Shown piece after piece: positions 1 to 15,543 of a stretch of DNA of 64,000 nt (positions are counted from its first letter, which is position 1; each line of letters begins with the position of its first letter). A model generated the notes under the pieces. The model had not been told where the DNA came from. It worked only from the letters and a program-made list of their open reading frames with translations, and made no database searches. The translations under genes were made by a program, and so were the position numbers. Source of the DNA: Tubulanus polymorphus (taxonomy: Eukaryota; Animalia; Nemertea); NCBI RefSeq assembly GCF_964204645.1, contig NC_134035.1:1674001-1738000 (forward strand), in the 5' to 3' direction.

Positions 1-296
1 GGGGACGCCTATGAGAACCTGTTTTAAATAACGCACAGGTATGAATGTATATGAACATCGTTGTAATTCCGGTTTTTACGGCATCAAAAAAGTTGCGATA
101 TTTGCTTCGCTATTAACACTCCCTCCCGTTAGATAATACAGTCGAATTACCAAAAAATTGCATCAAAAGATTGAATCGTGAGAGCATCTCAAAAACGACA
201 TTTCAATAAATTGTCGTTAAGCCCTTGGGTTGTTTATCCTATACCTGAAATTTAAGGAGTTAGCAAATAAACTGGTCGCTGAGCTATAATTAATTG

Positions 297-639
297 GAGA
301 GGCGCAGTGGCCAAGTGGACTAAGCCGCCGGTCACTGGTCTCGTCAATCCAGGGTTTATAGGTTCAAACCCTTGTGACGACAGAGTTTCTTAGTCGAATG
401 TTTTTCTCTGGTCTCTTAAACAACGAATCCACTTATAATGCCATGTGTGGCGCTTAGCGTTTTGAGGCTCTTAAAAAGAGCTATAATTCGTGCAAATTAG
501 GTTCAAACCCTTGTGACGACAGAGTTTCTTAGTCGAATGTTTTTCTCTGGTCTCTTAAACAACGAATCCACTTATAATGCCATGTGTGGCGCTTAGCGTT
601 TTGAGGCTCTTAAAAAGAGCTATAATTCGTGCAAATTAG
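297..639 (+). mobile_element. tRNA-derived SINE with a 139-bp tandem duplication of its 3' part
   Basis: A-box-like TGGCCAAGTGG (~308) and B-box GGTTCAAACC (361), followed by a non-tRNA body ending GCGTTTTGAG...AAAAGAGCTATAATT, which resembles L2-type SINE tails. Segment 361-499 is repeated at 500-638. Confidence 0.6.
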
Positions 640-973
640 ATCATTTTTCAAAAAATTGTTACCAATCTTTTCTAAGGGTCAGTCATACCCTAGAAACCTT
701 TCAATTAACATTAAGCTCATCTCTTACAGTTTTCACTCTATGGAGCTCGAAAGTTTCTATCGATTTTCCTACTTTTATGTTACCAATGATGGGCACTCTG
801 AGTGTTTTTTTTTATCAAATCACCCGTGAGTGCTGAAAGAGTTATGCCCTTGGATGATATATACTGGGAGGTGGGTTGATCCGACGTGGCTCCTTAACTC
901 ATTTCCACCCAAACACGTACTCGTATGTTCGTTATCTCCCATCACATTCCTGCCAAAACCGTACTGGCAAAAT

Positions 974-1143
974 GGTTGGCTTGTTTCTTAACTCAAAACC
1001 GTACCGATACGGTTGGCTTGTTTCTTAACTCAAAACCGTACCGATACGGTTTGCTTGATTCTTAACTCAAAACCGTACCGATACGGTTGGCTTGATTCTT
1101 AACTCAAAACCGTACCGATACGGTTGGCTTGGTTCTTAACTCT
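974..1143. repeat. 37-bp minisatellite, ~4.6 copies
   Basis: Unit GGTTGGCTTGTTTCTTAACTCAAAACCGTACCGATAC starts at 974, 1011, 1048, 1085 and 1122. Confidence 0.95.
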
Positions 1144-1834
1144 AACGATAGATGGCGAATTCATCGCACAACACCAGTTAGTTTAATGCCTTTTACTACT
1201 AAACAAACTCATCAGTTGTTCTATACAGTGTGCGAGTGACATCATCTATTGAAATGGGGGCCGAACACGCATGAACGAGCATATATTCTGCAAAATACTC
1301 CCTCTGCACTGGTTATCGCTACAGATTTTATCACTCTTAGAAGAAATGCCGCTTATTTTACATGAAAATGCAAGACCAGATCAAAGATATAAAACAAATT
1401 TGATGAGAAGATATCTCTTCTTGTTTTTGTTTTATGAATCTCTGAAAAACACGGAAATCCTGGCAAAACGCAGCATTGCCTGAAAAATAGGTGTGGCAGG
1501 CAAAGAGTTACGAATGTTCTTCATTTATATTCCCGCTTTTTTTCTCATATACCCTAATTATTCACTCGCCTTAAGCCCGCCGCACCGGCATAACATTTGT
1601 TTCGCCAAAACAGAAAACACACTTTTCAGAACACGTTTTGCCCACAAACAATAAAATGTTCAACGGACACGACATTTTGCTGTTCGGCGTTTTGTGTTTT
1701 GCCTTCCCCGCACACGGCATAACAAAAAACAGGCTTTAACCTCATGTACTAACACAATACAAATCATTTTCATCTCAAGTTTCAACATATTACAATTGAT
1801 AACCAGCCAACAGAACGGATACATCTAAACTTAC

Positions 1835-4800
1835 TTCGATGTCTGGGGACGCCAACGTGGACCTCGTTCCAGTGTGATGCTGTAAAAGAATAAAATTCAT
1901 TAATACAAAGCCTAGGAATTGGTAAATCGACCATGGAAAACATCATCTTGTTTTGCAGAAAATCTACCAGGCGAAAGAAAAAAACGAGTCGGAATCTATT
2001 CAATCGTTGCGCTTATGAAAATCAGCACCAGTTTATGGGCATAAAAATGTGCGCCAAGAATTGAATTTGATGACCAATACAAATAAACCAAAAATAGACA
2101 GGTTTGATATCTGTAACCGAATTGGATTTAGAGCCGCCTTTTTTCAGGTCAAAAACGATAAGTTACAAAGGGAATCGAACTCCGATTAAATTCTGTAACT
2201 TTGATGATAATTCTGACGAAAAACTCATAAGAATCGGTTGTTTCAAGGTAACAGAAGAATTAATACTTACTGCCTTTGCTGCTGTTTGTTTACGCTGATG
2301 ACATGAAAGAAAAAAAGAGAATTCCTTTTAGTTTTGTTATTTCACGTTCACACGTTAAATACAGTAAATATAAATACATCAATAAGAGATACATAAAATA
2401 TATGCACATATATCCGTGAGCAAATGCTTCCAGATTTTACTGTGTGTGCTAATGTTATATAAAAGAAACTTGATATATAAAATAATTCTAAGTGATGGGA
2501 ATTTATTTCATTGAAAGCAGGATTATTTTCATGACTTTGTTCCTGGTATGAAATATACGATGAAAATCAGAAACAAATCATCGTCTGTCAGAAAGAAATA
2601 AACACCACAGAAATTCCATGATACAGAAAACTTCTCACTTACTTCTGGTGCTGTTGTTCTTGTCGTCGTCGAATTCTGTCGCAATAAAAAAAAGAGAATT
2701 CATGAATTTCTTGCATTATTTCATATTCAGTAGCAAACATTAAACACAGGAGATCATATTATAATTAAAACAAAAGACAAGTTTTATATCTGTATTCGGG
2801 AAAAACCTCGATATTTCAGTATTCGTTTGTTTTAGGGTTTTATTTAAACAATATAAAGTCCATTAAACAGAAAAATTCAAACTTACTGTATTCGTCGCTG
2901 TTTGTCTGTTCTGTTGCAATAAAAGAAAAGAGAATTCATTAATTTCTTGCATTAAAACTCTGATCTCTGTAACTTTGATATTTCTGTATTCGTTTGTTTT
3001 ACAGTATGATTCAAACGATATAGAGTCCATTAAACAATACCAGACAGGTTTAATATCTGGAAAAAGATTTCATCAGAGTAAACTTGTTACAATGAGAGAA
3101 AACCAAAAACACCACGCGATAAATCAGTTTGATAATTCCTTTCATCGGGATATTTGCACTTTAAAAATGACAATTGTAATTATCATCATTACTATTATCG
3201 TTATTACTACGAGTTTGATGATAATTATGAACTACATGCGCAAATATAAGTGTATGTGTAAGTGAGCGCGCGCACAAACTGAAGACGAAATCAGTTACAA
3301 CTTGCTTAAAGAGTTATGAAGTTTCAATGACTCTCAGCGAAAATGGTAGATATCATATTCCACCGAGGAGATTAATAGAAAACTTACAAAATGAATTTCC
3401 GCTTCTACTGTTATCTAGAAAAGAGAATTAACATTCATATCTATAAAAATCATTCATTAAATGATCAATGAATCTAAGCGCCAGTTTTATGGAGACCAAT
3501 GTTTACTTTAATAAATCTGGGTTAACTTGATTAAAAGTGAATTCAGTTAACTGAGCACGGGTTAAACATAATACCAGTCTAACCGGCTTCAGAGGACCAG
3601 GTTAAACAAAACAGGTTTACATAAAATGATATCATAAAATCTAAACTTACTGGCGGCGGAATTTCCTCCAGGACTTCTGGCTGTTAGAAAAGAACAATAA
3701 CATTCACATTCAGGTCAAAAACGATAAGTTACGAAGGGAATCAAACTCCGATTAAATTCTGTAATTTTGATGATAATTCTGTTGAAAAACTCATAAGAAT
3801 CGGTTGTTTCAAGGTAACAGAAGAATTAATACTTACTGCCTTTGCTGCTGTTTGTTTACGCTGATGACATGAAAGAAAAAAAGAGAATTCATTTTAGTTT
3901 TGTTATTTCACGTTCACACGTTAAATACAGTAAATATAAATACATCAATAAGAGAGATACATAAAATATATGCACATATATCCGTGAGCAAATGCTTCCA
4001 GATTTTACTGTGTGCGCTAATATTATATAAAAAAAACTTGATTATAAAATAATTCTAAGTGACGGGCATTTATTTCATTGAAAGCAGGATTATTTTCATG
4101 ACTTTGTTCCCGGTATGAAATATACGATGAAAATCACAAACAAATCATCGTCTGTCAGAAAGAAATAAACACGACTAGAAATTCCATGATACAGAAAACT
4201 TCTCACTTACTTCTGGTGCTGTCGTTTTTGTCGTCGTCGTCGTCGTCGCTGAATTCTGTCGCAATAAAAAAAGAAGAGAATTCATGAATTTCTTGCATTA
4301 TTTCATATTCAGTAGCAAACATTAAACACAGGAGATCATATTATAATTAAAACAAGAGACAAGTTTTATATCTGTATTTGGAAAAACCCTGAAATTTCTG
4401 TATTCGTTTGTTTTAGGGTTTTATTTAAACAATATAAAGTCCATTAAACAGAAAAATTCAAACTTACTGTATTCGTCGCTGTTTGTCTGTTCTGTTGCAA
4501 TAAAAGAAAAGAGAATTCATTAATTTCTTGCATTAAAACTCTGATCTCTGTAACTTTGATATTTCTGTATTCGTTTGTTTTACAGTTTGATTCAAACGAT
4601 ATAGAGTCCATGAAACAGAAAAATTCAAACTTCTGTTGTCGTTGCTGCTGCAGCAGCAGCAAACTGTCGCGATGAAAGAATAGTAATTAATTGCGTTGTT
4701 ATTTCATATTGAGTAGCACACATTTAACAGAGATCATTATTAAAATGAATACCAGACAGGTTTAATATCTGGAAAAAGATTTCATCAGAGTAAACTTGTT

Positions 4801-7800
4801 ACAATGAGAGAAAACCAAAAACACCACGCAATAAATCAGTTTGATAATTCCTTTCATCGGGATATTTGCACTTTAAAAATGACAATTGTAATTATCATCA
4901 TTACTATTATCGTTATTACTACGAGTTTGATGATAATTATGAACTACATGCGCAAATATAAGCGTATGTGTAAGTGAGCGCGCACACAAACTGAAGACGA
5001 AATCAGTAACAACTACCATATTAAGAAGCGCATTAATAATCGGATTCGAACCGACCGTACTCATACAGATCTTGCCGAAGCCAGTCGTAGTTATAAAAAA
5101 ACTATAAGAAAGCACGTGAATTTACACAGAAAGCGTATGCAAAGAGAAATTCGAAACCTTAATCTTCATAACCCTAAAAAATACTGGCAGCTTTTAAACA
5201 GAAACACCCCTAGAAACACTAATATTCCAGTACCACTGGAGGACTTGTATGAATTTTTCCGGGATGCCAATAAGCAGCAAGATGATAGATCAGAATTACC
5301 TAATGTAGCAAATGATATGATCAATGAAAACGAGTCACTAAATGATGCTATATCTGCGGAGGAAATTTTAAAGGCAATTAAACTACTCAAAAATGGTAAA
5401 TCAGCTGGAAGTGATGGCATCCTAAACGAACATATAAAAGCCACTAAGGATATCATGCTCCCAGTTTATGTAAACTTCTTTAATATCGTTTTAGATACTG
5501 GGATACTCCCAGAATCTTGGCTAGAGGGCGTCATTTGTCCCATCTTTAAAGGTGGAAATGACAAACTACCAGAGAACTACAGGCCCATCACTATTTTAAG
5601 CTGTTTGGGAAAGGTTTTTACAGCAATACTTAATAATAGACTAACATGTTATATTGAAACAAACAACATCCTCCATAACAACCAAGCTGGATTTCGTCGT
5701 GGTTACTCGACAATTGACAACCTCTACATTTTACATATTTTAGCTGAAGTTATTAAAACTCAGAAGAAGAAACTATATTGTGCTTTCGTAGATTTTACCA
5801 AAGCCTTTGACACAGTCTGGAGAGCCGGACTATGGCAAAAGCTTCTTACAAATGGTATAAACGGTAAATTACTTAACTGTGTGAAGAACATGTATGACAA
5901 TGTTAAATCATGTGTGAGAGCTAATGGTAACCTATCTGCCTTTTTTCCTTGTGAGACAGGTGTCAGACAAGGTGAAAATATGTCACCGCTTCTTTTCTGC
6001 CTGTACTTAAACGACTTAGAAGAATTTTTACATAATAGAGCCAGTAATGGGATCAGTTTGTCCGATCATAACGATGTCATCGTTTATGCAAACTTGGTAA
6101 TTCTATTCTACGCGGACGATACGGTAATTTTTGCGCAGAATGCGCAAGAACTTCAGCGCAACCTAGATAATTTCCATGAATACTGCAATGTATGGAAACT
6201 AAAGGTCAATACTAGAAAAACAAAGATTATAATATTTGGTTCTAGAGGCTTAGGAAATGAACAGTTTCACATGGGAAATCAAAATATTGAGGTTGTTACC
6301 AGCTATAAGTACCTGGGATTATTATTACATCAAAATAGAGGTTTTTTGTCGACTAAGAAATACCTAGTCTCACAAGCAAAAAAGGCACTACACGCTCTAT
6401 ACTGTAAGACTTATAGTCTAAATCTTCCTCTAGATTGTCAGTTAAAACTATTCGATCAGACGGTGGTACCCGTCTTATTATATGGCTGTGAAGTCTGGGG
6501 GTTCTCTAACATAGATTCTATTGAGTCTGTTCACTTAAGTTTTCTGAGACACGTACTGAAAGCGCGAAATAGTACACCAACGTTCATGTTGTACGGAGAA
6601 ACTGGTAGATTCCCCCTTTCTATAGTAATTAAATCTAGAATTGTCTCCTTTTGGGCTAATTTAGTTAGTTCTCAGAACAAACTTTCTAGCATTCTGTATA
6701 AATCAGTTATGCGACCTTTTTACATTAACGGCATAGCTCCAAATTTCAAATGGATTAGAAATGTAAAAGATATTCTGTATTCTGTAGGTTTAAACAATAT
6801 ATGGGATGATCAATCCTTCCCAAACACTAGATGGCTGCAATCTACTTTAAAACGAAAAATAATGGACCAGTTCCTCCAAGAATGGAGAGCATCCATAAGG
6901 GAATCACCTAAAGGTGACTATTACTCTCTATTCAAAGATAATCATAGCCTGGAATTTATTTACACGTCGGACATTCCTGATGACCTGCTATATAGTTTAA
7001 GTAGATTTAGAACGTGTAACCACAAACTTCCAATTGAAACTGGTAGATGGATGAAAGTACCCAGAGAAAACAGGACCTGTCCTCTTTGCAACAGTGCTAT
7101 AGGGGACGAATATCATTATATATTATGTTGTCCAACCCTTGACGTTTTAAGGACCAAGTACATTGAGAGAAAATTTTCAATTTATCCAAACCAGTATAAA
7201 TTCTCCTCCCTTATGCAGACAAAAAACATCAGAACACTTTATAATTTATGTATCTTTATAAGTAAAATTGCTAAAATATTTGTGTAAACACGGCATTCGC
7301 TGCTATGTTATTTTGTATAATGTTCTATTTTTCACTCATATTGTCTAATTTGTAGACCTTGAGTTTGTCAAATAAACTGTAAACTGTAAGCTTAAAGAGT
7401 TATGAAGTTTCAATGACTCAGCAAAAATGGTAGATATCATATTCCACCGAGGAGATTAATAGAAAACTTACAAAATGAATTTCCGCTTCTACTGTTATCT
7501 AGAAAAGAGAATTAACATTCATATCTATAAAAATCATTCATTAAATGATCAATGAATCTAAGCGCCAGTTTTATGGAGACCAATGTTTACTTTAATAAAT
7601 CTGGGTTAACTTGATTAAAAGTGAATTCAGTTACCTGAGCACGGGTTAAAGATAATATCAGTCTAACCGGCTTCAGAGGACCAGGTTAAACAAAACAGGT
7701 TTATATAAAATGATATCATGAAATCTAAACTTACTGGCGGCGGAATTTCCTCCAGGACTTCTGGCTGTTAGAAAAGAACAATAACATTCACATTCAGGTC

Positions 7801-10020
7801 AAAAACGATAAGTTACGAAGGGAATCGAACTCCGATTAAATTCTGTAATTGATGATAATTCTGATGAAAAACTCATAAGAATCGGTTGTTTCAAGGTAAC
7901 AGAAGAATTAATACTTACTGGATTTGCTGCTGTTTGTTTACGCTGATGACATGAAAGAAAAAAAGAGAATTCATTTTAGTTTTGTTATTTCACGTTCACA
8001 CATTAAATACAGTAAATATAAATACATCAATAAAAGAGATACATAAAATATATGCACATATATCCGTGAGCAAATGTTTCCAGATTTTACTGTGTGCGCT
8101 AATATTATATAAAAAAAAACTTGATTATAAAATAATTCTAAGTGACGGGAATTTTATTTCATTGAAAGCAGGATTATTTTCATGACTTTGTTCCCGGTAT
8201 GAAATATACGATGAAAATCACAAACAAATCATCGTCTGTCAGAAAGAAATAAACACCACAGAAATTCCATGATACAGAAAACTTCTCACTTACTTCTGGT
8301 GCTGTTGTTGTTCTTGTCGTCGTCGAATTCTGTCGCAATAAAAAAAAAAGAAGAGAATTCATGAATTTCTTGCATTATTTCATATTCAGTAGCAAACATT
8401 AATAAACACAGGAGATCATATTATAATTAAAACAAAAGACAAGTTTTATATCTGTATTCGGAAAAACCTCGATATTTCAGTATTCGTTTGTTTTAGGGTT
8501 TTATTTAAACAATATAAAGTCCATTAAACAGAAAAATTCAAACTTACTGTATTCGTCGCTGTTTGTCTGTTCTGTTGCAATAAAAGAAAAGAGAATTCAT
8601 TAATTTCTTGCATTAAAACTCTGATCTCTGTAACTTTGATATTTCTGTATTCGTTTGTTTTACAGTTTGATTCAAACGATATAGAGTCCATGAAACAGAA
8701 AAATTCAAACTTCTGTTGTCGTTGCTGCTGCTGCAGCAGCAAACTGTCGCGATGAAAGAAAAGTAATTAATTGCATTGTTATTTCATATTGAGTAGCACA
8801 CATTTAACAGAGATCATGATTGAAACGAATACCAGACAGGTTTAATATCTGGAAAAAGATTTCATCAGAGTAAACTTGTTACAATGAGAGAAAACCAAAA
8901 ACACCACGCGATAAATCAGTTTGATAATTCCTTTCATCGGGATATTTGCACTTTAAAAATGACAATTGTAATTATCATCATTACTATTATCGTTATTACT
9001 ACGAGTTTGATGATAATTATGAACTACATGCGCAAATATAAGCGTATGTGTAAGTGAGCGCGCGCACAAACTGAAGACGAAATCAGTTACAACTTGCTTA
9101 AAGAGTTATGAAGTTTCAATGACTCTCAGCGAAAATGGTAGATATCATATTCCACCGAGGAGATTAATAGAAAACTTACAAAATGAATTTCCGCTTCAAT
9201 CGTAATCTAGAAAAGAGAATTAACATTCATATCTGTAAAAATCATTCATTAAATGATCAATGAATCTAAGCGCCAGTTTTATGGAGACCAATGTTTACTT
9301 TAATAAATCTGGGTTAACTTGATTAAAAGTGAATTCAGTTACCTGAGCACGGGTTAAAGATAATATCAGTCTAACCGGCTTCAGAGGACCAGGTTAAACA
9401 AAACAGGTTTATATAAAATGATATCATGAAATCTAAACTTACTGGCGGCGGAATTTCCTCCAGGACTTCTGGCTGTTAGAAAAGAACAATAACATTCACA
9501 TTCATTAGAATTATTTGAAAAGTAAGCATCTGGGGGTGGTTGCACGTCAATCGAGACTGAAGTCCGAAAGTGGTCTTAAATCTTAAGACTGGTCTTAAGT
9601 TGTTAGATTGGCTATAGAACCAAGTTGGTCTTAGACTGATCTTAAGTCTAAGACCTGACTATGGAACCGGCCCCAGAAAATGTTTCAGTTTTGAATCTTG
9701 ATTGTAACATCAAATGATAACCGGTCCCGGGTTCAATTGCACATTTAATTCATTATTCCATCTGTATCCTGGATGGTTAGTGAGGTGGAGTGGACGGTAT
9801 CTTTGATGGGTTGGTATGAACGCTAACACCAGGGGGAGTGGGGGCGGGGGATTTAAATCTAGCTCCGATATATCAATGAAATAGTGCGCACTATCTCAAA
9901 AATATCGATGACGTAGTGCACATCTACTCAGGTAAGTATACTAGGTATCAATGTAGATACAGACATATTATTGGAACAAAAAAAATGAATACTTACTATC
10001 TGCTTTCGTTTTGGAGCCAT
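1835..10020 (-). CDS. Micro-exon gene, repetitive Thr/Pro/Glu-rich protein of unknown function (continues beyond the left edge)
   Basis: AG/GTAAGT-flanked phase-0 exons on minus: 9997-10020 MAPKRKQI; 9443-9472 PEVLEEIPPP; 9180-9206 ITIEAEIHF; 8548-8571 NRQTATNT; 8294-8329 NSTTTRTTTAPE; 7919-7942 RKQTAANP; 7735-7764; 7472-7498 ITVEAEIHF; 4468-4491; 4211-4255 NSATTTTTTKTTAPE; 3837-3860 RKQTAAKA; 3651-3680; 3388-3414; 2887-2910; 2643-2675 NSTTTRTTAPE; 2271-2294; 1835-1879 HHTGTRSTLASPDIE. All coding lengths are multiples of 3 with no stops. A further exon probably begins at <=18. Confidence 0.8.
5015..7389 (+). mobile_element. 5'-truncated non-LTR retrotransposon (LINE; RTE-X/CR1-L2-like, clade tentative)
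   Basis: Absent from the paralogous cassette units (empty site ACAACT-T-GCTTAAAGAG at ~9089-9105). Has an RT ORF and a 3' tail AATAAACTGTAAACTGTAA. No clear TSD. Confidence 0.95.
5116..7287 (+). CDS. LINE ORF2 fragment: reverse transcriptase plus C-terminal Cys/His motif, no endonuclease
   Basis: Motifs NYRPITIL, QAGFR, FVDFTKAFD, GVRQG, FYADD, YKYLG and CPLC...EYHYILCC. The frame stays open upstream to the insertion junction (~5014), so the GTG start is not the real start. Confidence 0.95.
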   Translation: MNLHRKRMQREIRNLNLHNPKKYWQLLNRNTPRNTNIPVPLEDLYEFFRDANKQQDDRSELPNVANDMINENESLNDAISAEEILKAIKLLKNGKSAGSDGILNEHIKATKDIMLPVYVNFFNIVLDTGILPESWLEGVICPIFKGGNDKLPENYRPITILSCLGKVFTAILNNRLTCYIETNNILHNNQAGFRRGYSTIDNLYILHILAEVIKTQKKKLYCAFVDFTKAFDTVWRAGLWQKLLTNGINGKLLNCVKNMYDNVKSCVRANGNLSAFFPCETGVRQGENMSPLLFCLYLNDLEEFLHNRASNGISLSDHNDVIVYANLVILFYADDTVIFAQNAQELQRNLDNFHEYCNVWKLKVNTRKTKIIIFGSRGLGNEQFHMGNQNIEVVTSYKYLGLLLHQNRGFLSTKKYLVSQAKKALHALYCKTYSLNLPLDCQLKLFDQTVVPVLLYGCEVWGFSNIDSIESVHLSFLRHVLKARNSTPTFMLYGETGRFPLSIVIKSRIVSFWANLVSSQNKLSSILYKSVMRPFYINGIAPNFKWIRNVKDILYSVGLNNIWDDQSFPNTRWLQSTLKRKIMDQFLQEWRASIRESPKGDYYSLFKDNHSLEFIYTSDIPDDLLYSLSRFRTCNHKLPIETGRWMKVPRENRTCPLCNSAIGDEYHYILCCPTLDVLRTKYIERKFSIYPNQYKFSSLMQTKNIRTLYNLCIFISKIAKIFV
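9533..9673. mobile_element. PIF/Harbinger-like MITE family A (GGGCCRGTT termini, CWG flanks)
   Basis: TIR-bounded ~140-bp element with internal AAGACCAGTCTTAAG motifs. Related copies at 30113-30250 and ~51577-51714; degraded at ~35418-35530. Confidence 0.75.
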
Positions 10021-11479
10021 ATTTCTAGAAAACAAAATAGAGACATCATAAACATTTGAGCGACGACACTTATCATCATTTGAAAATTGGCATATCGATT
10101 GTAAACAAATCCGCCAGATGACAGATCTGTAATCAGTCAGTGCTATGGAGGGTAGCCCTTGGGTTTTAATAGAAACAATTTCAGAGACAACACATTAACA
10201 TCTGGCCCCAGTGTTACCGCACTATAGCAGTATGCGTGGTTACTACAGTTACATGGATTAAAAATTTCTAAGTATTTCATGGGTGATTTTTCAATTTTCC
10301 AAAGTGGAACTGAACCGATATCATCATGCTTCAGTTAACATTTTAGCGGTGACTGGTTGATACAGATGATTCTCAAGGGAATTTGCTGACGAAAGTTGCA
10401 CTTGGCAAATACACAAAATATAAATGAATTACCCAAATATTTCCTTGATTTTAGGAAAATTTCCGAAATTTATTTTTGGAAATATTTCCAAACTAGGAAT
10501 TATCATTTCAAAATTCCAAAGTTTTTCCCAATTTCCGCGTTCTGTGGGAACCATGAGTATGCCTGTTTATCTAAGTGCTGAGGTGGAATTTTTTAAATCT
10601 TTACATCTCCAGCACTTTCGAGTATTGATTAGTTCAATGAAATGCTTAACGCACCTTAAAATTTCAACAAAATATTTTGTTTAGGGTTTCATTCAGTAAA
10701 CCATCAGGCCATACATGCAGTTCAACAGTTTTGGACGCAATGGTATAACGGCAAGGCTAATGAATGAATAAGACCCTAAAGATATTTTCTGTTGAAGACA
10801 TTTTGAGGGCACCAACGATTCCCTACCATTTTTCATTACCAGTTGAAATTTGGTTTATTTCAGAATGTTTTAAATCTAAAAAACTGATCAAGAAATGTGG
10901 AACTGGGGGGTCCAGAACAGTGGAACTGGATCCTGATAGCCGCTTTAAATGAAATCTTTTTGACATTTTTGTTGAAGAAATTAAATTTGTGTAGGGTGCC
11001 AAAAATCCCAGATCAGTTATCCAAAGTAATACACACTAAATTTTTTATTTTCGTGTTTAAACTTTTCTCAACTTGGTCTCAACAGGACCAGTGAAACTGT
11101 ATAGTCCAGATAAACCATCGTTTCTATATCCATCTGACACTGTTTTCAAAAGATTGTCAAAAAATCGTCTTTAACTGATTTGAATCAGAGAAAAGAGACT
11201 CCATTTTATGAACTAAATAAATTTTAACAATATGTTCCATGCCTACCATTTTAAATTATTTTCAAATCATCAAAAATCATATTTCAGAGGCATGGAAACA
11301 CAAGAAACATTTTGTTAGAATTTCAAAAATGGCTGATCTTTTGTAATTGCAACATGAGAAAATGAAGACTTTTTGGCAATTCTTCAATATGGTGTAAAGT
11401 GGATGTAAATACAACTGTTTATTCAGACTGCACATTTTCACTCTGGTCGTATCGAGACCAAATTGAGGTGTGTTCAAAA

Positions 11480-11765
11480 GTTTACCCCCTTCAGTGTGTC
11501 TACAGCACAGTGTGGTATATAAATCGGTGATGGATTTTGCTCGTTCACCGCACTGCGGTGTCTTAATTAGTTTTTATCTCTATAGAAAGATGGCAGCACC
11601 TGTCAAACATAGTGAAATACTAGTAGCTAATGATACACCGTGCCGCGGTGTAGACGCGCTATAGTGGTATTCCCGTTATTCAACAAACTAGGGCAGAATT
11701 TTTCAAAATTTTAAAATTATCTCCAGCACTATAAGCTATTGATCAGTCAGCACTGAAAGGGTTAA
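11480..11765. mobile_element. Dispersed ~280-bp repeat, piggyBac-like MITE (ends AGGGTTAA)
   Basis: Homologous copies at ~25575-25848 and ~44300-44590, and a partial copy at ~10580-10650. Confidence 0.6.
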
Positions 11766-12041
11766 GAGAAATATCACAAAGTAACGGATGTCATGCAAAA
11801 ATTATGAAGACATCGGTCCATTCCGTTTCATGAACGTAAAAATAAAACCCTGTAAATCAATTCAACATTCACTAAATTCACCTGCATTAATGAAGAAATT
11901 TAAAATCGATTTTAAGTGTAAGATATTTTTTATCTAAGTGGGTCCTAGTCTAATTGGGTCTAACAGTCAGTTTCACAAAAATTTCATTGGCGAGATAAAC
12001 TTTAGTTAATGATGAAATTTTATAATCGATGCTAAGTGTAA

Positions 12042-12258
12042 GGCTAAACAAAAATGATACCTTGTTTCTCCGCAGCGGCCGGGTCATTTTTGTAAAATAT
12101 GATAAAATTTATAAACAGTTCATTTCTATAGCGGCCGGGTCTGTTATGGTAAAATTGATCACGATTTTAAAAGTAATGTAAAGGGTAGATAGGCGGCCGG
12201 CCGGGTCAACATTTAAGTTCAGCAGAGCGGAGAAACAAGGTATCAATTTTTTTTAGCC
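12042..12258. mobile_element. PIF/Harbinger-type MITE with TAA target-site duplication
   Basis: TIR GGCTAAA(C)AAAAATGATACCTTGTTTCTCCGC. TAA at 12039-41 and 12259-61. The empty site AAGTG-TAA-GATATT is visible in the adjacent duplicate at ~11914-11927. Confidence 0.9.
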
Positions 12259-14372
12259 TAAGATATTCTTCATCTAAGTGGGTCCAAGTCTAATTGGGTC
12301 CAAGAGTCAGTTTCTCGAAAATTGTACAGCTATTTTCTATTTCGACTTGACTTGCACATCAGGTGGCCTAGCTCAGTCAGTTTTAGTGGTATATACCTGA
12401 TAGAAGTCTTATTAGGACCAGAAAGGACTGGCAGTTGACGAAAAACATTGTTTTCTGATCCATTCTACACTGTATTTAAGGATTGCAATAAAGTCTTCAT
12501 TGAAAACAGTTAAAATAAAGAAAAGTGGCTCTATGATTCTAACATTAAATTCTAACAATTTATTTCCATGCCTACATAGCAAACTTCAGTTGCTAAGGCT
12601 TTTTTGTAATCATTTGATACAGTGTGCAATGGATTAAAAAACGACTGCCCCTCAGTAAGTTTAGGTAGTATATACCTGATATTAAAGAAACGGGTCAAAA
12701 GGGTAAGCACAGATGGGCAGCTGATCTAAAAGCATCGGTTCCATTTAAACTGCATTGAGGGATAACCTAAATCTTCTTTAACTCAAATGATCTTCAATAC
12801 AACGTAAAATGGATTAAATATCAAAGTTTAAGGTTGGCCGCCTATCTGTGCCATCTCATTTGAGACCTTTATAACAGGTTACGTACTACCAAAACTGACT
12901 GAGCTAGGCCACCTGATGTGCGGCCAAATCTAGTTGAAATAGAAATTAATCGAAAAACAATATTCTTTACCAACACTAATGGATACAAAAATCTTGTAAA
13001 ACCAGGGCCAACTAAAATCGGGGAAGCAATTTCATGACATAAATTTGACACCAAAATCTATTTCATGGCTCAGTATTTTATGAGAATAGATAATTCTAGA
13101 ATATAATCATATTTTGCCTAGTATTTGTTGATTTGTATCAACATCATCCACAGCTAATAGTGATCTAAGGTCTCAGTGAGTTGTATTGTATTCAAACAAC
13201 TGTAAGACATGCCGTTACATTTTGAGCAGCCAGGGTTTGACTAGTTCGCCATCTAGTGGATACTATGAATTATGAGTGTCTATCGGATTAAATTGTCAGC
13301 TGGCAGATGAGCTTGGCAAGAAAGTTTTTCAAATCGATTCTAAAAATATTTACATTTAATTCAGTTTATCTCACCAATAAATTTTTTGTGAAACTGACCC
13401 CTGGACCTAATTAGACTAGGCCCTACGTGAAGAAAATCTTACTCTAAAATCGCTTTTAAATTACTTCAACACGGGTGCATATTGAATCGATTTAGGATTA
13501 ATTTCGTTTTGGGAAAATGTACCCAGGGTCGTATATTTCATATAGGCAGCTATCAGGATCCAGTTTCACAGTTCTGGACCCAGTTCCACAGTTGTAAGTT
13601 AGAGCTAACTGAGTTCATTTTCAATGTTTTAACTACAATCAATTTTGAACTCAGATTTAGAGTTCAGGTTTAAAGCAAATTGAAATGAACTAATTTTAAC
13701 TCAAAGTAAACCAAAGATGAAACCGAGATCGAATGCTGATTTTCAGATGCAGCTCTCAATTCAGAATAATTCTTATCAAAATAATTTCTGATCTTTAGGA
13801 CTAATTTCACACCCCTTAACACTGGACAAAAATGAACTCAGCTAGCTCTACCACAACCTGGAAGCTTTGTTTATTTTCTACCCTTAGCTACGTATAAAGC
13901 TCGGGTCTAAAATCAAAACTTCACTTCAAAAACTTAGGCCTAGTTTACAAAAAATGGCCACCGGGCTGAAGAGGTAGGAGGGAGAGGGATCGCCGCCGAC
14001 GGGGCTTTGTTTCTTCAGTTTTCTTCTGCCGTTCGTTCGACCATCTCATTTTTTCAACCAGTCGCTGCTGTGATGATATTCTCCTGCAGAAATTTGAGAT
14101 CTCAAAAAGATCGGCCTCAAGAATATCGGCGGCGATCAGGATTGAGGAGCGGGATGGGTGCGGAAAGTGGCGCCATTTCAGACGACGGAATATCGAGTTA
14201 AAACATCGTCTGAAATATCAGTTTACATCAATAGATGATCGTCAAAAACTATTTCTACGCCGTCCAAACGACCTCTTCTGTTATATTGGCCGTAAAATCT
14301 ACCGCAAAACGATCCGATTTAACGGATGTAAAGAGATTTAAATCGAAAAAAATCACCAACACGTTTACTTAC

Positions 14373-14490
14373 ATCGCTCGATTTAGCATGAATGATAATG
14401 CGCGCAACGGGCGAGCCAATCACCGTGACGGAAACAATAGGATCCAATCAACGGAACGGATACTATCGGATGCCGGACCACGTGGTGTGT
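14373..14490 (-). promoter_or_regulatory. Candidate first exon and promoter of the micro-exon gene
   Basis: Minus-strand donor GAT|GTAAGT at 14373; CpG-rich patch with CCAAT boxes (~14416, ~14443) and CACGTG (~14479). A second candidate donor GAT|GTGAGT lies at 14685. Confidence 0.45.
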
Positions 14491-14768
14491 TTGAATCGGC
14501 GGCACTCGGATACGGATTCTATAACCGAACCGTCGAAATGATATATCATTATCAATTTCAATTGATGTATCGAAATATCAATTCGACTATCGATAGAAAT
14601 AGAAATGATTATATCGTAGATCTTTTAATATCAGTATCGGATTTTTTTTAGATTTTACGGACGCCCGACGACCAAACAACTCACATCATCCTCGATTGCC
14701 AGGGGCCGGATGAAACGTTGAACGCGGACTGCGTATCGGCCATCGGCACTATCTAGGCTATGAACCCA

Positions 14769-15543
14769 GGGGCGGATACAGGGGGTTGCACCTGCGGCTC
14801 GTGCGACCCCTTGAATTTGTGAAGTGCCCTTTTCAAAAAGATTCTCATGAAAATACAGCGCCAGCAAAATCCGACGTCCGGACCTATGAAATTAATTAGA
14901 ATTTGAATTATTGCGGAAAAGGGCACTTTATATTGCAAAAAATGGCACGTTTCATTGAATCAATTGCCAAAAGGCACGTTATATTGTCAAGAAGGGCACA
15001 TATATTGCGAAAAAGGGCACGTTCATTTGCAAAAAAATTAAGAAAAGTGCTCCAAAAATAGTTTGAAAAATCCTGTTATGGGCACGATTAATCTCCAAAA
15101 TGAGGGCGCATGTGTTCAATCATATTACCGTACTGATGTGCTCTGACAGGGCACAACTCTGTGACTATCGGCACGTTCAAATTGCCAAAAAAATCCTAAA
15201 GGCACATTGTATTGCCAAAAGGGCACGTTCATAAAAATTCAGAAAAGGGCTCAAAAATAGTTGGCTCAAAAAAATGACTAATAACTATCACATTCTAAAA
15301 GGGGCACATTCAAATTGCAATAAATACTAAGAGTGGTTTGTTATTGCCTAAAATTCAGACAAGGGTATTTTTGCTATTTTGATGCCTCAGATGCTCTGAT
15401 AGCTGGTCTTCAAATTTTTAACTGATTCTAAACCCCTTGGTGGCTTCGTACCTTCGGTGCTCGCCTCGTCGTGGTAATACAAATCCGGACAGGTGCCCTC
15501 TTGAATGACTGCTACCCCTTGAATTTGGGCCTAGATCCGTCCC
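14769..15543. mobile_element. TIR element with GGGCGGATCC-type ends and internal AAAAGGGCAC repeats
   Basis: CAG-GGGCGGATAC...GATCCGTCCC-CTG. A related element lies at ~15955-16793 and a short one at ~46790-46960. Confidence 0.7.

Follow-up and report, generated by a model that had tools for sequence, protein, structure and literature searches.

The window analyzed here, a 64,000-nt stretch of Tubulanus polymorphus DNA, carries on the minus strand of positions 1835 to 10024 an array of 17 exon-like units of 24 to 45 coding nt each. From its sequence, we consider it likely (probability of about 0.7) that this array forms the 5' third of a genuine protein-coding gene that is lineage restricted, multicopy, and unannotated.

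Micro-exon array and cassette structure

We scanned both strands of the window, without filtering, for a pyrimidine tract plus AG followed by 15 to 90 nt and then GTAAGT. The scan returned the same 17 micro-exons that a first-pass annotation had claimed from their pyrimidine tract, AG, phase-0 frame, and perfect GTAAGT donor. Unit lengths were, in order, 28 (4 nt of leader plus 24 coding), 30, 27, 24, 36, 24, 30, 27, 24, 45, 24, 30, 27, 24, 33, 24, and 45 nt. Frame 0 was open in 17/17 units, with more than one reading frame open in several, and all coding sequence of the gene in the window consists of symmetric exons of 24 to 45 nt. Additional hits on the minus strand of 1835 to 10024 were solely nested alternative acceptors within the same exons. 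Each GTAAGT on this strand of the interval (17/17) terminated an open unit with a coding length that is a multiple of three. These 17 occurrences lie in 5.8 kb of nonretroelement DNA; the remaining 54 kb of the window holds 8 (density in the array, ∼20 times that of the remainder), and only a handful of tract-AG-GTAAGT units were found outside the array, counting either strand.

The array consists of a start exon, three tandem 1.7-kb cassettes (exons A, B, C, D, E, and F), and one closing exon, with introns 83 to 100% identical between cassette copies. All 17 of the consecutive exons originally claimed are present, but they are not independent: because the six-exon cassette was tandemly triplicated, introns included, they represent only seven distinct exon types. 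The original list also overlooked two poly-Ala units, the exon C copies at 8711 to 8743 and 4631 to 4663. The features are as follows ("scan" marks those taken from the scan).

9997..10024, minus: start exon E1; acceptor, 4-nt leader, ATG, MAPKRKQI, GTAAGT (scan)
9443..9472, minus: cassette 1 exon A, 30 nt, PEVLEEIPPP (scan)
9180..9206, minus: cassette 1 exon B, 27 nt, ITIEAEIHF (scan)
8711..8743, minus: cassette 1 exon C, 33 nt, FAAAAAATTTE, weak donor GTTTGA
8548..8571, minus: cassette 1 exon D, 24 nt, NRQTATNT (scan)
8294..8329, minus: cassette 1 exon E, 36 nt, NSTTTRTTTAPE (scan)
7919..7942, minus: cassette 1 exon F, 24 nt, RKQTAANP (scan)
7735..7764, minus: cassette 2 exon A (scan)
7472..7498, minus: cassette 2 exon B, ITVEAEIHF (scan)
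5016..7389, plus: 5'-truncated non-LTR-type retroelement, in the cassette 2 intron between exons B and C
4631..4663, minus: cassette 2 exon C, weak donor GTTTGA
4468..4491, minus: cassette 2 exon D (scan)
4211..4255, minus: cassette 2 exon E, 45 nt, NSATTTTTTKTTAPE (scan)
3837..3860, minus: cassette 2 exon F, RKQTAAKA (scan)
3651..3680, minus: cassette 3 exon A (scan)
3388..3414, minus: cassette 3 exon B (scan)
2887..2910, minus: cassette 3 exon D (scan); exon C is deleted from this cassette
2643..2675, minus: cassette 3 exon E, 33 nt, NSTTTRTTAPE (scan)
2271..2294, minus: cassette 3 exon F (scan)
1835..1879, minus: exon G, 45 nt, HHTGTRSTLASPDIE; last exon of the gene in the window

The E1 ATG has A at −3 and G at +4, and E1 is the same in all nine loci at which the gene occurs. 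Exon A is identical in 24 of its 26 genomic copies. Two variants, ITIEAEIHF (cassette 1) and RKQTAANP, are private to this locus. The Thr-rich exon E measures 33, 36, or 45 nt here, as the first-pass annotation noted, and 33 to 57 nt across paralogues. However, it sits in an (ACG/ACA)n run, so that 3-nt slippage is expected with or without selection and explains these whole-codon variants; trinucleotide slippage would likewise be expected to produce the length changes that preserve the frame in exons C and E. We therefore dropped whole-codon length variation, which is confined to trinucleotide runs, as a sign of selection. The retroelement, a 2,374-nt insertion antisense to the micro-exon gene, retains an intact open reading frame of 723 amino acids (5116 to 7287) with a reverse-transcriptase domain (Pfam RVT_1; E = 1.6e-42); it is private to this copy and missing from the eight paralogous loci.

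Gene beyond the array and its predicted product

Upstream of E1, we read the following feature from the sequence.

14373..14484, minus: putative promoter and short first exon

This block contains CACGTG at 14479 to 14484 and two ATTGG/CCAAT boxes (14444 to 14448 and 14416 to 14420). The candidate leader exon terminates at 14373 in GCGAT, directly followed by GTAAGT, and an ATG within it (14387 to 14389) would share a frame with MAPKRK. The block is 97 to 100% identical across the nine loci; a diverged copy retains the promoter boxes and has lost the leader-exon ATG and donor. Transcription would probably start from this CCAAT/E-box promoter, ∼4.4 kb upstream, and the short leader exon would probably be spliced to the 28-nt ATG exon encoding MAPKRKQI. 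The message would then run through three A-B-(C)-D-E-F phase-0 cassettes and the closing micro-exon and, outside the window, at least 12 further micro-exons and five larger exons before reaching a stop. The exon structure and phases along this path are observed, and we infer their splicing. The spliceosome probably recognizes such tiny exons through the U1-complementary GTAAGT, the pyrimidine tract, and conserved flanking intron.

The gene extends past the window to lower coordinates (G000:C11:1659563-1671855). The exons downstream of exon G, at least 12 further micro-exons and five larger ones ending at the stop, have intron phases that chain. The phase-0 run is followed by exons of 52 nt (phase 0 to 1), 66 nt (1 to 1), and 236 nt (1 to 0) and then by the stop-bearing terminal exon; three asymmetric exons offset one another's phases. 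A single frame, with consistent phases, leads from an ATG in good context through ∼35 exons to the stop, giving the gene its own ATG and stop inside ∼34 kb, and exons of ≤60 nt account for ∼966 of the ∼1,900 coding nt of the whole model. Common flanks (AATGAATTCTCTTTT...YAG and GTAAGTTTGAAT) are found around units D, E, F, I, J, K1 to K3, and L, and the bodies and lengths of these units (24 to 60 nt) differ, with every length a multiple of three. Older intragenic duplicates, at ∼72% identity, retain splice sites and frame. Relative to a diverged copy, the 120-nt exon shows 5 synonymous codon changes and 1 replacement. Open-frame relatives of the 78-amino-acid exon, 46 to 57% identical to it, occur at 35 or more other sites in the same genome.

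In the predicted product, Thr makes up 22% of the residues, Ala 12%, and Glu and Pro 11% each; Cys and Trp are absent, and hydrophobic residues amount to 15% (P+E+V+K, 30%). In its N-terminal region, a 19-residue acidic-hydrophobic block (PEVLEEIPPP plus ITVEAEIHF) alternates three times with Thr/Ala-rich basic spacers. Judged by composition, this region is most likely disordered, multivalent, and nonsecreted, and possibly nuclear. The product is low complexity and Thr/Ala/Pro/Glu rich, and it is probably disordered, as first proposed. Inspection likewise agrees that the basic start is unlike a signal peptide, since MAPKRKQI and PEVLEEIPPP are charged and lack a hydrophobic core.

The adjacent DNA, which the first-pass annotation had suggested inspecting for a C-terminal domain, does supply larger exons to a stop, but no Pfam domain was found on them. 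Pfam searches with the 40-, 84-, 155-, and 111-amino-acid exon translations returned nothing beyond sub-threshold low-complexity matches, and the 78-amino-acid exon had no Pfam domain; the larger exons were searched one at a time, micro-exons of 8 to 15 amino acids being too short for searches of this kind. An exhaustive HMMER search of 1.84 billion cluster representatives with the 78-amino-acid exon returned just two spurious repeat proteins, and the ESM Atlas gave no usable match for it. For the 40-amino-acid exon, the lone match in a PDB sequence search (MreB; E = 0.43) was rejected, and its interpretation as half an Alba fold was abandoned, being without Pfam support. Compared by eye, the peptide of exons A and B matched none of the published PxIxIT, RVxF, LxxIxE, or EVH1 ligand patterns. 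No processed retrocopies with joined exons were found: all 26 exon A copies lie in the nine loci, each followed by its intron. Our literature search on micro-exons in Nemertea found no paper covering both.

Nine loci and competing explanations

The gene is present as nine near-identical loci in end-proximal duplicated blocks. Cassette number varies: one paralogue has two, and another carries a duplicated exon D. Exons A, B, D, E, and F are whole in 26/26 cassettes, and E1 and G are whole in 9/9 loci; across 149 strong-exon copies, we found zero stops, frameshifts, or lost AG or GT. Variable columns were rarer in splice regions (4/133) than in introns (128/1,338; P = 0.0099), and 3 of the 4 fell at exon C. 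Exons A, B, D, and F together had 12 variable sites; 7 were synonymous (P = 0.014) and 8 were at third codon positions (P = 0.019). Since the strong exons are free of defects, the splice regions are less variable than introns, and substitutions are biased toward synonymous, the sequence evidence favors a genuine coding gene. All copies are alike enough that gene conversion could maintain such features without selection.

Exon C behaves differently from its neighbors. Of its 26 copies, one is deleted, another has a 1-nt insertion, and a third has GC in place of GT (3/26 defective versus 0/131 strong-exon copies; Fisher P ∼ 0.004), suggesting that it is probably a decaying or rarely used exon. 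Because it decays next to five sister exons that never break, exon C provides a built-in control for selection where exons are too small for the usual tests.

In the young copies, exon-body variability equals the intron level (12/105 versus 128/1,338 columns). Such intron-like variation would fit an array that is spliced but noncoding, either a repeat-built long noncoding RNA or a host transcript with functional introns (snoRNA-host-like), as would the tandem exon-plus-intron repeats, the introns that stay nearly identical even beside a diverged exon, and the absence of homologues and domains from our searches. However, a noncoding RNA would not readily account for lengths in multiples of three, a frame open from ATG to stop over ∼35 exons with compensating asymmetric phases, or the synonymous bias. 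Nor did the cassette introns yield any Rfam family (E ≤ 1) or tRNA when positions 1 to 15000 of the window were searched, although Rfam holds few spiralian snoRNAs. We regard this explanation as quite unlikely. The near identity of nine copies within end-proximal duplicated blocks, together with the 2.4-kb retroelement and the lost exon C of this copy, could instead indicate silent or dying members of a once-active family, kept alike by recent segmental duplication and gene conversion, with this copy a pseudogene. Yet the retroelement is intronic and antisense, and several copies show exon C decay while the strong exons remain intact throughout. Splice-region variability is below the intron level, and the ∼72%-identical older duplicates keep frame and splice sites; we consider this reading unlikely. 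That there is no gene at all, and that chance or a satellite-like repeat mimics splice sites, is barely credible. The DNA is indeed AT rich and tandemly repeated, and some exon-like units are simple trinucleotide runs, but seven exon types and at least 12 downstream, all on one strand, each combine a tract and AG with a length divisible by three and a donor of the GTAAGT type, in a coherent frame from ATG through stop.

Under the favored coding-gene reading, the array would have grown by nested tandem duplication, from an exon-plus-intron unit of ∼250 to 400 bp to the 1.7-kb cassette and then the triplet; the locus, of at least 30 kb, would then have been copied to nine, with gene conversion later. 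Because every exon is phase 0, dropping single exons or whole cassettes would preserve the frame, a design that permits combinatorial exon skipping. A bolder proposal, which we consider rather improbable, is a system in a free-living ribbon worm resembling the micro-exon genes (MEGs) of schistosomes but serving an intracellular, probably nuclear protein. In this proposal, the micro-exons of the three cassettes in each of the nine gene copies, several of them with the UGC-type signal of regulated microexons, would be skipped or included combinatorially, singly or as whole cassettes, to tune the number and spacing of the 19-residue motif in a disordered scaffold.

Significance and comparison with known systems

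The locus illustrates a route of gene growth in which nested tandem duplications turn an exon-intron unit into a cassette, the cassette into a triplet, and one locus into nine. Such genes escape ORF-based and most homology-based annotation, and nemertean genome annotation probably overlooks a family of ∼50 members.

In the SNORD116 cluster, a tandem snoRNA host, short exon and intron repeats have introns more alike than their exons, and the exons are frameless. The array described here is likewise built of short exon-plus-intron tandem repeats; in contrast to such hosts, it keeps its reading frame and exon phases along with a synonymous bias, and the Rfam search of its introns yielded no snoRNA-like family.

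Neural microexons dependent on SRRM3/4 (eMIC) are, like the exons here, very short and have a strong 5' splice site, a tract, and UGC between tract and AG (bioRxiv 10.1101/2024.09.17.613571). The sequence UUAUUGC(A/G)ACAG precedes exon types C, D, and E and the downstream units K1 to K3; however, because these units are paralogues of one another, this signal amounts to about one observation, and UGC is missing from exon types A, B, F, and G. Moreover, the neural microexons are single conserved inserts in folded proteins and do not form arrays from which a whole protein is built.

As in the titin PEVK region, a multi-exon block, introns included, is present in tandem three times within the gene, encodes a repetitive, low-complexity, extensible-looking segment, and varies in copy number (PMC9142044, PMC6087456). 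The present product, in contrast, is Thr/Ala/Glu/Pro rich and not P/E/V/K dominated (30%), its exons are two to three times shorter, and the gene has no Ig/Fn3 domains and is not a giant muscle gene.

The first-pass annotation had also drawn a comparison with schistosome MEGs, in which short symmetric exons of 6 to 36 bp hold ∼80% of the coding region (PMC5825161). The architecture is indeed alike: runs of short symmetric exons form much of the coding sequence, the genes are multicopy, fast evolving, and lineage restricted and grow by micro-exon duplication and shuffling, and the design permits frame-safe exon skipping (PMC5825161). The likeness is one of architecture, with no homology detected in searches of the individual larger exons, and, as that annotation had recognized, it does not extend to a signal peptide: MEG products nearly always carry a signal peptide or a membrane anchor, whereas MAPKRKQI-PEVLEE has no hydrophobic core. 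The exons here are also longer (24 to 60 nt versus 6 to 36 bp), only about half of the coding sequence is in micro-exons, and the host is a free-living nemertean as opposed to a parasitic flatworm. If the gene is expressed, proteins built from micro-exons would include not just antigens secreted by parasitic flatworms but also a disordered protein that acts inside the cells of a free-living spiralian.

The micro-exon array and its repeat structure

We read the minus strand of window positions 1500-10400 directly and searched the entire window, both strands included, for units made of a pyrimidine tract plus AG, 15 to 90 nt, and GTAAGT, without selecting for frame or length. The scan returned 17 units in 1835-10024 (minus strand), where extra matches were confined to nested alternative acceptors within those units, and a handful of matches on either strand in the other 54 kb. 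Coding length was divisible by three and frame 0 was open in every unit (17/17). Each of the 17 minus-strand GTAAGT motifs in this interval ended one unit, and the remaining 54 kb held 8 GTAAGT. Because scan units and GTAAGT are concentrated in 1835-10024, the observed array of exon-like units is real and far from chance. The first-pass annotation had described a pyrimidine tract, AG, and perfect GTAAGT at every exon, with phase-0 coding lengths in multiples of three; the unfiltered scan bears out both points. It had also counted 17 consecutive exons. These units are present but are not independent, since direct-repeat analysis and alignment revealed a 1.7-kb cassette in three copies (introns included; 83 to 100% identity), and one exon, C, had been overlooked.

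Exons of the array (minus strand; A to F form the cassette, which stands three times between E1 and G)
E1, start exon: MAPKRKQI
A: PEVLEEIPPP
B: IT(I/V)EAEIHF
C, window 8711-8743 and 4631-4663: FAAAAAATTTE
D: NRQTATNT
E: Thr-rich
F: RKQTAA(NP/KA)
G, last exon inside the window: HHTGTRSTLASPDIE

Exon C has a poor donor, GTTTGA, and is deleted from cassette 3; the intron 3′ of it is exon D's intron minus four donor bases. Exons C, D, E, and F share an upstream flank, AATGAATTCTCTTTT...YAG, and a downstream flank, GTAAGTTTGAAT, with micro-exons I, J, K1-K3, and L beyond the window, and these units match at ~72% over exon plus intron. A single exon-intron unit is the ancestor of the whole array.

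Two repeats lie in the gene's introns:
5016-7389, plus strand, 2374 nt: retroelement insertion between exons B and C of cassette 2
1105-1510: ~400-nt dispersed repeat (at least 40 copies, 83 to 90% identity, many contigs) within the 4-kb intron 3′ of exon G
The insertion is a young retroelement of non-LTR type, truncated at its 5′ end, whose 723-aa reverse-transcriptase ORF is intact and whose 3′ tail is (AAACTGT)-like. It is antisense to the gene and confined to this gene copy, being missing from every paralogue.

Downstream and upstream parts of the probable gene

We examined 20 kb beyond the window (C11:1674001-1738000) at lower coordinates of its contig, C11, and found the following in order 3′ of exon G.

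Downstream exons
C11:1671736-1671855 (L009:7736-7855), minus strand: 120-nt exon
Twelve phase-0 micro-exons, 27 to 60 nt, including RERKKKALE, DPVSPKRARVGPVK, and RDEIPPLRRSPRLRRRR
52-nt exon, phase 0 to 1
66-nt exon, phase 1 to 1
236-nt exon, phase 1 to 0
Terminal exon, 155 codons, then stop

The frame is exactly regained across the three asymmetric exons (52, 66, and 236 nt), which is hard to explain unless frame matters. The gene's end was reached in this adjacent DNA, and its larger exons matched no Pfam family.

Upstream, CACGTG and two ATTGG boxes stand 5′ of a candidate short leader exon ending at 14373, whose ATG would share frame with MAPKRK. The leader exon is a suggestion only, because a diverged copy retains the boxes and has lost the leader ATG and donor. 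Within the putative first intron, a ~230-nt block (13940-14170) is ~97% identical to a diverged copy at C8:14.005 Mb, with flanks at ~80 to 85%; the block is possibly regulatory, or else exonic for a feature on the opposite strand.

Paralogous loci and signs of constraint on exons

In the 268-Mb animal assembly (77 contigs) used for copy counts and searches, the gene occupies nine loci (six on C11, two on C9, and one on C8), all less than ~3 Mb from contig ends. Exactly 26 copies of exon A occur genome-wide, all within these loci, which carry three cassettes in eight cases and two in one; exon D is duplicated in one locus. In a tree of 25 cassettes, some clustered by position (seconds together, thirds together) and others by locus, namely those of the two C9 loci; the cassette triplication is therefore older than the locus duplications, and gene conversion has been active since. 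Extra copies of exons from the middle and 3′ end of the gene, partial, inverted, or scrambled and in some cases with stop codons, adjoin full copies (C11:3011870-3015239; C8:13953168-13955026; C8:13995665-14005588).

Exon C served as an internal control for selection on its sister exons. All 149 exon copies (A, B, D, E, and F in 26 cassettes; E1 and G in nine loci) were free of stops and frameshifts and kept their AG and GT. In contrast, the 26 copies of exon C included one deletion, one 1-nt insertion, and one GT-to-GC donor change (3/26 versus 0/131; P ~ 0.004 by our own arithmetic), and its length ranged from 33 to 66 nt. The poly-Ala exon C is apparently decaying while its sister exons stay under constraint. 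Variable columns were rarer in splice regions (4/133, three of them at exon C) than in introns (128/1338; P = 0.0099). Exon bodies in A, B, D, and F were as variable as introns (12/105 columns), with 7 of these 12 changes synonymous (P = 0.014) and 8 at third positions (P = 0.019). The 120-nt exon differs from its diverged copy (C8:13998046-13998165) by seven clustered bases, which alter five codons synonymously and one by replacement, between introns 97 to 100% identical over ~400 nt to either side; the pattern resembles that left by a short patch of gene conversion or by selection acting on this exon. Indel lengths divisible by three (17/18 in exons, 6/23 in introns) were given no weight as evidence of selection, because most exon indels fall in trinucleotide runs.

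Relatives, product, and known systems

The 78-aa exon had no relative among 1.84 billion representatives, an Atlas search with it gave no lead, and the 40-aa exon had no relative in PDB. Within the same genome, at least 35 further open-frame relatives share the end of the 78-aa exon (46 to 57% identity), many ~30 kb apart in tandem arrays close to contig ends, with a common motif like RQPxPxAxRWSxRVxGRLxEGxLxE.

Regions with relatives of the 78-aa exon
C6:0.65-1.75 Mb
C3:0.4-1.3 Mb
C8:15.1-16.3 Mb

The gene is therefore one member of a larger, species-restricted family.

The window exons encode 166 residues (188 with exon C), comprising 22% Thr, 12% Ala, 11% Glu, and 11% Pro, no Cys or Trp, and a near-neutral charge. 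An acidic-hydrophobic 19-mer (A plus B) occurs three times, alternating with Thr/Ala-rich basic spacers. The protein start is basic without a hydrophobic core, and further basic clusters follow. Judging from composition only, the product would be disordered, non-secreted, and possibly nuclear; the MAPKRK start, earlier called NLS-like rather than a signal peptide, is indeed unlike the latter.

Overall, we put the probability that the array is a real-looking gene at roughly 70%. Several exons have the layout of SRRM3/4 microexons, UGC before AG and a strong donor (bioRxiv 10.1101/2024.09.17.613571): UUAUUGC(A/G)ACAG, directly 5′ of exons C, D, and E (window 8572-8584, 8330-8342, and paralogous positions), puts UGC between pyrimidine tract and AG. 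This may serve as a lead rather than a test, because the UGC-bearing exons are paralogues. Titin PEVK and nebulin contain triplicate tandem regions (PMC9142044); the three-fold tandem block is alike here, whereas composition and domain context are unlike. The architecture is similar to that of schistosome micro-exon genes (PMC5825161), although the signal peptide that is a criterion for those genes is missing here. The gene would be a variant of the micro-exon-gene kind.
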